DNA from: Asterias rubens
Lineage: Eukaryota
Assembly (NCBI RefSeq): GCF_902459465.1
Contig: NC_047082.1
Coordinates: forward strand, 7,378,001 to 7,442,000
Reading direction: 5' to 3'
DNA: 64,000 nt
Both the position numbers and the translations under genes were made by a program. The notes beneath the pieces are model-generated. The model was not told the origin of the DNA. It searched no databases and was given only the letters and a program-made list of their open reading frames with translations. Of this stretch, positions 7,701-61,859 are shown in pieces. Numbering within the stretch: the first letter of the stretch is position 1; every line of letters begins with the position of its first letter.

Positions 7701-10700
7701 TCAAGTGAGAAGACATGTTTTTAAAATACGACTGCAGGTGTCTGCTTGCACACATTGGCCCAGATTTGTTTGCCCAATGACCAGTCCTGGTCAGACTTCT
7801 TAGCATTTGGACAACTTGTTATGACTCAACAAATGTTTAGTGAAGGTTTGAGAAAGATTCGGCTAGGGTTGCCTGACATTTCGACCCAAGCAGAGTCTTT
7901 CTCGGAGGTTCGAGAAAGCGTCTTCTAGGGTCGAAACATCAGTCAAATAACTATTTTTTGCATTTATACCATCGGTCCATTGGGTTGGTAAGTTGTTTGC
8001 AACAGCTAATTTTATTTCCTCACAGAAATTTGCTAAGCAGTATTTTCTGCTTCACAGTATTACGAAGATGGGCCTAGAGGGTGAAGACAATGTGAACCAC
8101 AGTGGATTATGGGCGCAGTTTGATGGTGGTGCTACCAAGTTCAAATCCCATCCATTACAACCTGTCATACCATAACTGTACTATTATCTCGTTTCCATGT
8201 TCGCTCACAGCAACGTCTTAAATGCTAAAACGACAAAGGGACGTAAAATGTGAATCTTTAATGAAGACACTGGTCCTTCGGTTTTGTACTACAAAATCCC
8301 TACTTTTTTAAATAAAGACATCAAACTTCTTTCTGGTTAGAGGGAACGTATACCTTTCGATGTTGAAGCTGTTCGATTGCTTTAAACCTATATAAATGTA
8401 GATTATACAATAAAACTAATTGGATTGGGTTTTTCAGTCACTGCACAGGGTTTTCCTTGAACTGAAATGTTTTCATTGTCTTCTCACCCTGTCCAGATGC
8501 TGAACAGGCTTTGACAAGAATTATCAAAGATGTAGATGTTCTCTTTTAGACGAACCTTTGACGAGTTACACAGATCAATCAGAATCTGCTCCATGAAAAA
8601 CTTACTCCTCCCGTAAGGATTTGTGATGGAGCCACCGACAGGTTGGTCTTCATCAAGAGGTAACTTCTCTGGAGAACCATAAACTGTTGCCGAGCTCGAG
8701 TAGACAAAGTTCTTTACCTTAAATTGTTTCATGAGCTGAAATTGGAAAAAACATGAACATTATCAAGCCTGTTTTAAACTTCCTGCAAATGCGGAGCAAA
8801 TTTGTCGCTCAAGTCAACTTTTCTGTGTTCAACACCAAAATGAATTAAATAACATTGGAGTAAAATTCCTCTGACTTACATTTAACAAGTTGAGCGTTCC
8901 ACCAACATTAACTCTGTAGTAATCTAGAGGTTGTTCAACAGACTCTCCAACAGCCTTCAATGCAGCAAAATGGATGACTGACACTATCTGGTGCTGATGG
9001 GCCAAAAATAAACATAGAAATATTAATATTAGTGGCTTCTTCTATAGCATCCATATCAATCACTCAGTGATGCTCAAGGCGCTTCAACCATCAGTATTTC
9101 CTTCAAGGTATGTGGGACAACGCTTAAATTATGAGACCTACTCATTTTACATAGCACCATGTAATGTTTTACAAGGTGCTACTGGGCATTCAGCAGCCAC
9201 TGCCAGGAACACTGGGGCGATTCCCTTCTCTAGGCTAAAAGTGTTACTGGGATCTTTCACGTGCGCTACATACACATCAATGGGACCAAGAGCTTTACGT
9301 CCCATCCGAAGGACAGGGCATCAACGTTAAGTGTATATCTTAAGGGCACAGGTGTCACGACTGGGACTCAGAAACACCAAAGTTCGAGTCCAATGTTCTT
9401 AACCGCTTGACCACGACACGCCACAACAATAGCCGAGTCTTTAATCTCTGTGAGGGTCATTTTGCTTCTTTCAACAAAATCAGAAGGTGCAGGGAGATCA
9501 ATCAGGAACAAATCGTAACGCATCTCATGACAGCTACAAAGTCCAGAATTGTGACTATCCTTCAAGAAGACGTTTCTAAGGTCTTCAACGTCCAACAGAT
9601 CAATCTGATATACCAGTATTTTCTTCTCTCCACCCAAGATTTGACTTACCTTCAAGAAGACGTTTCTAAGGTCTTCAACATCCAACAGATCAATCTGATA
9701 TACCAGTATTTTCTTCTCTCCACCCAAGATTTGACTTACCTTCAAGAAGACATTTCTAAGGTCTTCAACATCCAACAGATCAATCTGATATACCAGTATT
9801 TTCTTCTCTCCACCCAAGATTTGGCTTACCTTCAAGAAGACATTTCTAAGGTCTTCAACATCCAACAGATCAATCTGATATACCAGTATTTTCTTCTCTC
9901 CACCCAAGATTTGACTTACCTTCAAGAAGACATTTCTAAGGTCTTCAACATCCAACAGATCAATCTGATATACCAGTATTTTCTTCTCTCCACCCAGGAT
10001 TTGCTGGACTCTATGCAGGCTCTCAGGTAGAGAGTTTTTTCCTGTCGACGAAATCACACAAGAAATAAAGAGTTAATAGATGTTAAATTTACATGGGGGA
10101 TGAAGGATATTAATTTTGGTTTTACCCCAACATCGATGTGTGTTAGCGCTACTCAGTACTTTCCCAAGTTCTGTGAAGAAAAAAAATACGAACTGCCTCT
10201 AGCTACTGGGCAATCTCGGTTGTCTAGTTGGTAAGACACTGCTCGAGAATTGCAAGGGCTTTGGGTTTGAATCCCACTTGAGTAATATACCTGTGATTTT
10301 TGTTCGCAGAACTCGGAAAAGTACTGTCAGAGTATACAGTGCTAACACACTACATTGTAAGGGTAAAACCAAATCTAATAAACAAATAAAGAGCTAAACG
10401 TTTTCCCAATAAAATTACATCTTCAGTTCTTCAAGATGAACAGTTTCCGACTGAAAGTTCACTGCAGTCCTTGATTTTCATCTATAAATGGAGCAAGTGC
10501 AGTTTCATTTTGCAAAGGGGACTTCCATCAGCCTTTCTGGTGTATAGTGGAACCTTATGAGTGCACTGTTTGGTGTAAACAAAGAAGTGCAAGTTACCGC
10601 TCTGTTCAATTTGTCTTTGTTTAAACCCAAACTATTTAATGCCAAATGAAGTGAATAAAACTTTACCTTTGGCTGCATTTGAGAAGTTGTCGACAACGAT

Positions 10701-10796
10701 GATGTTATAGTCCTCTTTCAACATTTCTAGAACAGTATGACTTCCGATGTATCCCGCACCCCCAGTTATCAAGACATACTTGGCGGTATCACCCAT
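4707..10796 (-). CDS. GALE: UDP-glucose 4-epimerase, 8 coding exons, 352 aa
   Basis: Exons (minus): 10667-10796, 9920-10041, 8880-8993, 8556-8735, 6715-6895, 6098-6261, 5358-5472, 4707-4759; all GT-AG, phases consistent, total 1059 nt. Motifs: [79 protein letters not shown]. Confidence 0.97.
5094..5270 (-). mobile_element. tRNA-derived SINE (family 1)
   Basis: Minus strand reads gtgtcaaggccaaacgattaagagcac...gtgtgggttcgaatccc (A/B-box-like). Related copies near 31160-31260 (+), 41184-41330 (+) and 51290-51425 (-). Confidence 0.7.
9551..10003 (-). repeat. 90-bp tandem repeat x5 containing the 3' part of GALE exon 2 plus its splice donor
   Basis: cttcaagaaga starts at 9560, 9650, 9740, 9830, 9920. 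AAG|gtaag donors at 9919, 9829, 9739, 9649; the last copy ends AAG|gatagt. The unit translates in frame as [30 protein letters not shown]. Confidence 0.97.
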
Positions 10797-60646: not shown

Positions 60647-61859
60647 TCAACAATCTAAGAAGTTTGCCGCCATGAGAAGCTCCAGAGCAATTTCAGGTGC
60701 GATTGGGAACTCGGGGATCTCTGTGGAACTGTTTGTGTAGCGTACTTTGTAGGTAAAGTACATGCATACCTTGCAGAGAACGTGCGACCTGCATTGACAG
60801 ACAAATAAGACCGTTTAAGATAGTTGTGAGAGTGCGACCTGCATTGACAGACAAATAAGACTGTTTAAGATAGTTGTGAGAGTGCGACCTGCATTGACAG
60901 ACAAATAAGACTGTTTAAGATAGTTGTGAGAGTGCGACCTGCATTGACAGACAAATAAGACTGTTTAAGATAGTTGTGAGAGTGCGACCTGCATTGACAG
61001 ACAAATAAGACTGTTTAAGATAGTTGTGCGAGTGCTTTTAAAAATGATAATAATAATAGCCACCATTTATAAAGCGCATACAGCATCGGCATCAATGCGC
61101 TGACAAACACCAAGACATTAAAAATTACTTTTAAATTCACGACTCTCTGACCTTGCTGAGTACTGTATTAATAATTTACATTTCCAAATGCTGCACATCG
61201 GTTTCAATAAAAGTAGCGACACAGATGAGATACATGAACTTTGAAACGAATAAACCAATATGCTCAACACCTAAAGAACAACACAGTAATAGATCTTAGT
61301 TTCGAATTCTGACTTACGGAATTTCTCTGAAGAATACTTCATTCGCTTCATTCTCAGCAAACGTACCTGGAAATAGAAAAATAAATTATAAAGACATGTC
61401 AGTTGATGTGATATATTTACATTTTACCCAATGCCGACTTAACGTTGACCTGGCCCTATATCCTAATTGAGCCCAAATGGCGACTTTAGTCATCCAAGAC
61501 AGCGCAAAAAGCACTCAAGCACAAAGGCCATTATTAAAAAGTTTTAGTTTTATTCCCTCCATATCCAAGCTTAGCATAATGCAAAAGAGAAAGAATTGAT
61601 CTTTCCGATGGTAACCTTGTTCTAGTATTGTGCTTAGCTACTTTTTGTGCTAAAGCAGCTCTATGAAATTGGGCCCTGACATAAACTCTGACCCACCTGG
61701 CCCACTCAGCATGGCTTTTATCGTCCCTGAAGTCAATGCCAAATCACGCTTCACATAAAACTCATGTCCGTCAGATGACACCAGTTTGACATAGAGGGCG
61801 TCTGGTCCTTCACAACCTCCGTATATCTTGTCATCTTCACCATCTTTGTGATCGGCCAT
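60647..61859 (-). CDS. ELOC: Elongin-C, 3 coding exons, 117 aa
   Basis: Exons 61697-61859, 61318-61366, 60647-60788; total 354 nt. [65 protein letters not shown]. Confidence 0.98.
60782..61035 (-). repeat. 50-bp tandem repeat x5 containing the ELOC exon 3 acceptor and first 7 exon nt
   Basis: gtgcgacctgcattgacag starts at 60782, 60832, 60882, 60932, 60982; each copy reads ctgtcaatgcag|GTCGCAC on the minus strand. Confidence 0.97.

Follow-up and report, generated by a model that had tools for sequence, protein, structure and literature searches.

Mirage-like tandem arrays span splice junctions in four genes of the starfish Asterias rubens

We analyzed a 64,000-nt stretch of the Asterias rubens genome (the window, in whose coordinates positions are given) and four genes within it: GALE (UDP-glucose 4-epimerase), a gene here called TM gene C (TM-C), RPS7 (eS7), and ELOC (elongin C). 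Each of them carries a tandem array that lies across an exon–intron boundary, at a donor site in GALE and TM-C and at an acceptor site in RPS7 and ELOC. Comparison with other starfish and with independent contigs showed that these arrays are genuine, arose independently and at different times, and vary in copy number. The arrays, the exons on which they lie, and two control arrays in the same window are listed below.

9920-10041, minus strand: GALE exon 2, located by tblastn of XP_033644870.1 residues 41-84; authentic donor GT at 9919-9918
9552-10003, minus strand: GALE donor array, with copies at 10003-9914, 9913-9824, 9823-9734, 9733-9644, and 9643-9554
27367-27471, minus strand: TM-C exon 2, encoding an Arg/Ser-rich ectodomain; donor GAGGAG/GTAAAAC (the slash marks the boundary)
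26988-27407, minus strand: TM-C donor array, five copies of 89, 89, 88, 83, and ~71 nt
48945-49019, minus strand: last coding exon of RPS7, located by tblastn of A. rubens RPS7 residues 171-196; acceptor AG at 49021-49020
49011-49169, minus strand: RPS7 acceptor duplication, two copies of ~77 bp, 86% identical
60647-60788, minus strand: last exon of ELOC including the stop codon; authentic acceptor AG at 60790-60789
60782-61035, minus strand: ELOC acceptor array, five copies of 50 bp, 99% identical
49512-49624, minus strand: control array, 41 bp in 2.8 copies, inside the final intron of RPS7 at a distance of 40 nt from the donor, without a junction
44235-44729, strand not assigned: control array, 162 bp in three copies, inside a 4.3-kb segment at 44087-48398

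Arrays were detected using Tandem Repeats Finder, with a rerun at the lowest score threshold for arrays with a period of at least 25. The program reported 90 bp in 5.0 copies for GALE (98% identity), 89 bp in 4.8 copies for TM-C (90%), 77 bp in 1.9 copies for RPS7 (49015-49162, 86%), and 50 bp in 5.1 copies for ELOC (99%). At the lowest threshold, the two control arrays were the only others of such a period in the whole window, and four of six long-period arrays thus span a junction. All four consist of head-to-tail units of 50-90 bp in 1.9-5.1 copies, and in every case a genuine exon–intron boundary, checked against RefSeq or orthologous proteins, lies inside the unit. The authentic site is in the first unit of the donor arrays and in the last unit of the acceptor arrays, and the exon contributes ~81-84 nt to the unit in GALE, ~40-62 nt in TM-C, ~9 nt in RPS7, and ~8 nt in ELOC. 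These data bear out the initial annotation, made from the sequence of the window, which had described its cleanest long-unit repeats as sitting on splice junctions, with units of 50-90 bp that copy the junction and adjacent exon into the intron and are unrelated to one another. Pairwise alignment scores between the four units were indeed within the range of shuffled sequences, and we therefore rejected a shared unit, motif, or mobile element as their common source. No consistent flanking inverted repeat was found at the four arrays; a single, unrelated pair resembling a miniature inverted-repeat transposable element (MITE) lies near GALE intron 1. Flanking inverted repeats or pairs of short interspersed elements (SINEs) were rejected as drivers, as none occur at the other three arrays.

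For comparison, we used orthologous loci from A. amurensis (GCA_032118995.1; L001 and L006) and from the distant starfish Patiria miniata (L005, L007, and L008). The comparison of arrays with the sister species covers GALE, ELOC, and RPS7, as TM-C of the sister species lies in the 15 kb that separate L006 from L001. Of the control arrays, the 41-bp array is also present in A. amurensis. The segment that holds the 162-bp array lies between an ADH-like gene and RPS7, is absent at the orthologous A. amurensis site (L006 14465/14472), and contains reverse-transcriptase-like open reading frames (ORFs) on both strands. This segment is probably a recent retroelement insertion, and its array probably came with the mobile element instead of being duplicated in place.

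The GALE gene model is well anchored: Exon 1 is 100% identical to A. rubens XP_033644870.1, and exon 2 ends with ...DLRNVFLK directly before GTAAGT, with the RefSeq protein running straight on with HQIVSV of the next exon. The array unit comprises the last ~84 nt of exon 2 followed by GTAAGT(CAA), and its length corresponds to exactly 30 codons, in frame and with no stop. Donors 1-4 are intact, which places decoys at +90, +180, and +270 from donor 1 (9919), one of them in the form GTAAGC. Copy 5 carries GGATAG and is thus a dead donor. The A. amurensis array (L001:10802-11073) consists of three copies and has the same dead last donor. At unit position 7, the first copies of both species have a C; the last copies agree in GGATAG and in a C at position 72. 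The inner copies, three in A. rubens versus one in A. amurensis, carry species-specific variants. The edge copies are orthologous, with the difference in number confined to the inner copies, and the array, dead terminal donor included, is therefore older than the split of the two species. The same pattern indicates that the interior has been turned over by concerted evolution from which the edge units were excluded, as was described for the amphioxus globin mirage, a minisatellite whose edges likewise escape homogenization (PMC3087553).

Two further observations concern the GALE region. Positions 8153-8224 match the alternative exon, 18 residues long, of GALE isoform X1 in A. amurensis (75% over 24 aa) and lie outside the A. 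rubens RefSeq product. In addition, tRNA-derived SINE/MITE-like copies are found in introns near the arrayed exons, at 10108-10380, 24250-24310, 27560-27620, and 9380-9460. One of these is flanked by 43-nt inverted arms (10108-10150 and 10338-10380), and one reaches the Rfam threshold as a tRNA, a borderline hit and the sole match in an Rfam scan of the window. The copies bear no consistent relation to the arrays.

TM-C has no named relatives. Its exons at 28012-27943, 27471-27367, and 26124-25676 join in frame to form a three-exon gene, and the Patiria miniata ortholog XP_038055025.1 likewise has three exons with both introns at matching positions, which together establish the donor GAGGAG/GTAAAAC as genuine. 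A representative search recovered only Patiria and the last exon on an 847-bp contig of another starfish as relatives. The unit consists of ~40-62 nt of exon and ~27-48 nt of G-rich intron, and GGTAAAAC is kept in all five copies. Donor 1 thus precedes four further donors, all of them intact, and any of these decoys would shift the reading frame if used. On the coding strand, the intronic half of the unit (26988-27407) is very rich in G (GGGG..GGG..GGG..GGGGG); a G-quadruplex is possible there and could contribute to replication slippage at this locus alone. TM-C is one of three paralogs clustered at 15300-28012, all single-pass membrane proteins that have PPxY motifs and an Arg/Ser-rich ectodomain, and it is the only one of the three that carries an array. 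The Patiria ortholog also adjoins a paralog (L007 10001-12270 and 15107-16483).

The RPS7 unit combines ~68 nt of the intron end, where the polypyrimidine tract lies, with the AG and an exon part of ~9 nt. In the Tandem Repeats Finder output, the overlap with the exon is marginal (5 nt). The alignment to A. amurensis shows that the duplicated unit includes the AG and ACCGACACC; a chance extension of the array into the exon was rejected because the unit in this alignment is 76 nt long and takes in the AG together with 9 exon nucleotides. In the upstream copy, AC replaces the AG. Together with the last GALE copy, this accounts for the two cases in which the outermost copy had been reported to lack its GT or AG. 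A. amurensis has one RPS7 copy, a chimera-like sequence whose 5′ part resembles A. rubens copy 1 and whose 3′ part resembles copy 2, which is the outcome expected of unequal exchange. Moreover, divergence between the A. rubens copies is 14%, more than the ~7% seen between the species in aligned columns. The simplest reading of these sequences is an old duplication that would have been lost in A. amurensis by unequal exchange; an A. rubens-specific duplication with fast decay of the decoy is a possible alternative. Elsewhere in the gene, a block of ~24-34 nt in an RPS7 intron (50416-50449) is identical or nearly so between Asterias and Patiria; it could be an intronic small RNA (snoRNA-like), with no Rfam match at the gathering threshold.

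The last ELOC exon was located by tblastn of Patiria elongin-C residues 72-117, to which it is 100% identical. Each unit of its array consists of 42 nt of the intron end and 8 nt of exon, so that the authentic acceptor is preceded by four decoy AGs, all of them intact. Each of them, if used, would put the terminal exon out of frame, with loss of the conserved C-terminus. In A. amurensis, the unit occurs once, with GCAC at both ends. Support for a true repeat in A. rubens comes from three independent contigs in ENA metagenomes with ~98% identity to the window: In contig L002 there are 2.1 copies, the most that an assembly with k=141 can resolve, and contigs L003 and L004 stop exactly at the array border, 61035.

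Across the three loci that can be compared, copy numbers in A. rubens versus A. amurensis are five versus three in GALE, five versus one in ELOC, and two versus one in RPS7. Patiria has no array with a period of at least 25 at any of three orthologous loci. These comparisons make it extremely improbable that the arrays are products of assembly or polishing in which a single copy was falsely multiplied. Such an explanation could draw on the 98-99% identity of the ELOC and GALE copies, the exact number of which is as given by the assembly, and on the presence of only 2.1 ELOC copies in the short-read contig. However, the GALE array recurs in the assembly of a second species with shared edge variants. 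The ENA contigs give at least two ELOC copies, and two of them end at the array border, which is what a genuine repeat exceeding the k-mer length would produce. In addition, the RPS7 and TM-C copies differ from one another by 10-14% and by indels. On the evidence from the sister species and the independent contigs, we rejected an artifact.

The borders of the units suggest how the arrays began. In all four, they coincide with short direct repeats of 1-10 nt in the unduplicated sequence: CAAATCCTGG in the exon versus CACAATTCTGG in the intron of GALE (the exon form can be given as CAAATC(C/T)TGG), 1-2 nt in TM-C, CCTT in RPS7, and GCAC in ELOC. The breakpoints thus lie at ordinary microhomologies, and the splice site itself is never a breakpoint. 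Microhomology of this kind fits known routes to small tandem duplications (PMC8355091) and is, at the level of sequence, the kind of trace that replication slippage or microhomology-mediated break repair leaves behind.

Taken together, these features make it probable that the four arrays are minisatellites of the mirage type, which were seeded by slippage or microhomology and are nearly neutral, with the authentic site kept in use. Under this model, each array would have started as an ordinary small tandem duplication. Two short direct repeats, spaced 50-90 bp apart and by chance lying on either side of a junction, would have given rise to it through replication slippage or microhomology-mediated break repair. 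Copies would later have been gained and lost by slippage or unequal exchange. The arrays would persist as nearly neutral sequences because the spliceosome still uses the authentic site, whereas a duplication of equal size inside an exon would be purged by selection. In donor arrays, the most upstream donor would be chosen, as was shown experimentally for the repeat in intron 7 (IVS7) of human F7, and in acceptor arrays the exon-adjacent acceptor would be chosen, presumably by exon definition. Inner copies would be homogenized, and edge copies would drift and lose their GT or AG. The seeding mechanism, the near-neutrality, and the choice of splice site in starfish are what we infer from these data.

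Available gene models agree with the continued use of one site. At this level, the authentic site is the only one used in the RefSeq models of RPS7 and GALE and in the 117-aa ELOC product of A. amurensis, and RPS7 isoforms vary at the N-terminus alone. Trace use of decoys would be compatible with these models. Among Asterias GALE proteins in a 90%-identity cluster, all products are 352 aa long except for a single isoform of 370 aa, whose difference lies elsewhere, and no steps of +30 aa occur. A 234-aa GALE read-through ORF matched only the canonical GALE cluster, which is a weak negative, as starfish transcripts are thinly covered in the database. GALE and TM-C each have the authentic donor upstream of all its copies, and by analogy with F7 their downstream donors are probably silenced by a 5′-to-3′ scanning-type choice of the first donor. 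The arrays have also created no new intron: Intron positions equal those of the Patiria and RefSeq orthologs, with no extra intron.

These findings also bear on the proposal that the arrays are selected regulatory devices, in which stacks of decoys tune splicing efficiency or isoform output through recruitment of U1 or U2AF, in-frame GALE variants, or poison isoforms. In its favor, GALE donors 2-4 would extend the protein in frame by 30, 60, or 90 aa with no stop codon, and most decoys are intact (three of four in GALE, four of four each in TM-C and ELOC). Nonetheless, no annotated isoform uses a decoy, copy number shifts freely between the sister species, and Patiria lacks the arrays. GT or AG has been lost from edge copies, and the high identity of the copies can be explained by youth or homogenization; the true exon and its copies differ little, but such differences as exist have not been purged. 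Furthermore, ELOC decoys would yield frameshifted terminal exons that escape nonsense-mediated decay. We therefore regard a regulatory role as very unlikely. The initial annotation had offered either tolerance of the arrays in this lineage as "tunable splicing decoys" or a mutational process biased to junctions. Its description and the tolerance reading hold up, with a single site in RefSeq models, copy numbers that differ freely between species, and a frameshift expected from any ELOC or TM-C decoy; tuning finds no support, and a mutational bias is suggested at most.

Whether junctions carry more arrays than expected depends on the null model. As arrays expand in place, the relevant question is whether a junction lay in the single ancestral unit. 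We therefore collapsed each array to one unit in pre-duplication coordinates with ~64 mapped splice sites. Under this seed-unit null, the probability of at least four junction arrays is 3-5e-4 for six arrays in the whole window and about 2e-3 for five arrays in gene bodies. It falls to 8e-5 in the whole window when the 162-bp array is dropped (five arrays), which can be justified because this array lies inside an A. rubens-only 4.3-kb insertion with reverse-transcriptase fragments. Under a null that places whole arrays in present-day coordinates, the corresponding values are 0.026 for the whole window and 0.145 for gene bodies. The window was, moreover, picked post hoc among 782 that had been scanned, of which 0.06-2 would be expected to look like this by chance. 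Given the post hoc choice and the dependence on the null, the enrichment is nominal, and it is suggested rather than established.

Several observations nevertheless sit poorly with seeding that is blind to junctions. Uniform neutral seeding predicts ~4-20% junction arrays, and four of six were seen, or four of the five that arose in place. In ~40 kb of alignment to A. amurensis, there are four tandem-type length differences of at least 20 bp, and three of them (GALE, ELOC, and RPS7) are at junctions. The fourth is a 113-bp array in 4.3 copies, present in A. amurensis only (L006:5302-5788), which lies in an RNASEH1 intron and ends ~35 nt upstream of the acceptor. In addition, all four arrays, donors and acceptors alike, have the unit border that is downstream with respect to transcription only 6-28 nt beyond the junction, so that most of the unit is upstream of the junction; the probability of this is about 0.01-0.02 if the junction is uniform within the unit (post hoc, n=4). 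These points hint at something beyond chance, and all of them were noticed post hoc.

They are the main grounds for the alternative that a transcription- or splicing-linked mutational process biased to splice junctions seeds the arrays, for example through polymerase pausing or R-loops near splice sites that lead to staggered breaks and repair by tandem duplication. This alternative implies a true over-representation of junction arrays in Asterias, perhaps also in amphioxus, and can claim the low seed-unit probabilities, the positions of the interspecies differences, and the common position of the downstream border. It also fits the location of both non-junction arrays within genes, the 41-bp and the 113-bp array, just 35-40 nt from a splice site. 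Set against it are the whole-array null (0.03-0.15), the choice of the window, the breakpoints at ordinary microhomologies rather than at splice sites, and the absence of a shared motif or flanking inverted repeat at the four arrays. The first element of the F7 repeat is described as spanning the boundary (PMC1557585), which lends no support to a shared polarity. On balance, we consider a junction-biased process unlikely as the source of the arrays, and the same doubt applies to the wider proposal that Asterias, like amphioxus, seeds or expands tandem duplications preferentially at or just upstream of junctions in a transcription- or splicing-coupled manner. The bias to junctions put forward by the initial annotation thus gains a nominal enrichment, which is null-dependent and post hoc and comes with neither a common motif nor an inverted repeat. 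As a separate observation on the RNASEH1 intron, its A. rubens counterpart has only a 46-nt match (57764-57809) and carries in its stead an inverted-repeat element of ~390 bp at 57372-57763.

Ordinary microhomology-seeded duplication with tolerance at junctions therefore remains our preferred explanation, and the arrays are of interest under either reading. Identical splice sites that compete within one array amount to a natural experiment on site choice by the spliceosome, and junction arrays have been proposed as raw material for intron gain and exon extension. Their history can be dated between two sister species, and the two chromosome-level Asterias genomes, with their many loci, allow a tractable test of junctions as mutational hotspots. 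If the enrichment reflects chance plus tolerance, the arrays are an ordinary by-product of a minisatellite-prone genome, and they would serve chiefly to warn of pitfalls in gene prediction and short-read assembly. If a junction-biased process is true, it would have a polarity, with the unit ending 6-28 nt downstream of the junction, and structural mutations would concentrate at splice sites, from which exon extension, intron sliding, and intron gain would steadily arise.

Arrays of this kind have precedents, which the initial annotation had not recognized in treating the class: Amphioxus mirages and the human F7 IVS7 repeat were already known. Amphioxus mirages go back to Canestro et al. 2002, as cited in PMC3087553. 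A mirage is an amphioxus minisatellite that duplicates an intron–exon boundary, with examples in Adh3, the globins BflGb6 and BflGb9, troponin C, and PGBD5 (PMC3087553, PMC3902484). Mirages occur in donor and acceptor versions, vary in copy number, have homogenized interiors, and leave splicing undisturbed, and their origin is unknown (PMC3087553, PMC3902484). The starfish arrays share with them the boundary-spanning units of tens to ~160 bp, the donor and acceptor types, and the presence of several arrays per genome. Common to both are also a copy number that differs between haplotypes or species, and inner copies that are homogenized with the edges excluded. The normal splicing of mirages probably has its parallel in starfish, as gene models suggest. 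They differ in their host, an echinoderm (Asteriidae) instead of a cephalochordate, and in that instability is seen here between species. Our literature search found no report of mirages in starfish or other echinoderms.

The human F7 IVS7 repeat is a 37-bp variable number tandem repeat whose first element spans the exon–intron boundary and whose identical pseudo-donors are competent but silent (PMC1557585). Experiments with 50 constructs showed that this silencing reflects 5′-to-3′ scanning that picks the first donor (PMC1557585). GALE and TM-C have the same arrangement, with the authentic donor most upstream and followed by a run of near-identical donors. In starfish, however, the choice of site is deduced from gene models, and the acceptor arrays of ELOC and RPS7 have no counterpart in F7. 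A third point of comparison is the Rogers model, in which introns are gained by tandem duplication of an AGGT proto-splice site (PMC3265369, PMC4974935, PMC2891723). As in that model, duplication adds copies of splice signals within a gene and could in principle give rise to exon extension or a new intron. The starfish units differ in holding an existing junction rather than an exonic AGGT, and their extra copies lie in a pre-existing intron. Among these systems, the starfish arrays thus show every structural feature of the amphioxus mirages, gene models point to normal splicing as well, and the arrays extend this class beyond cephalochordates to a new phylum.

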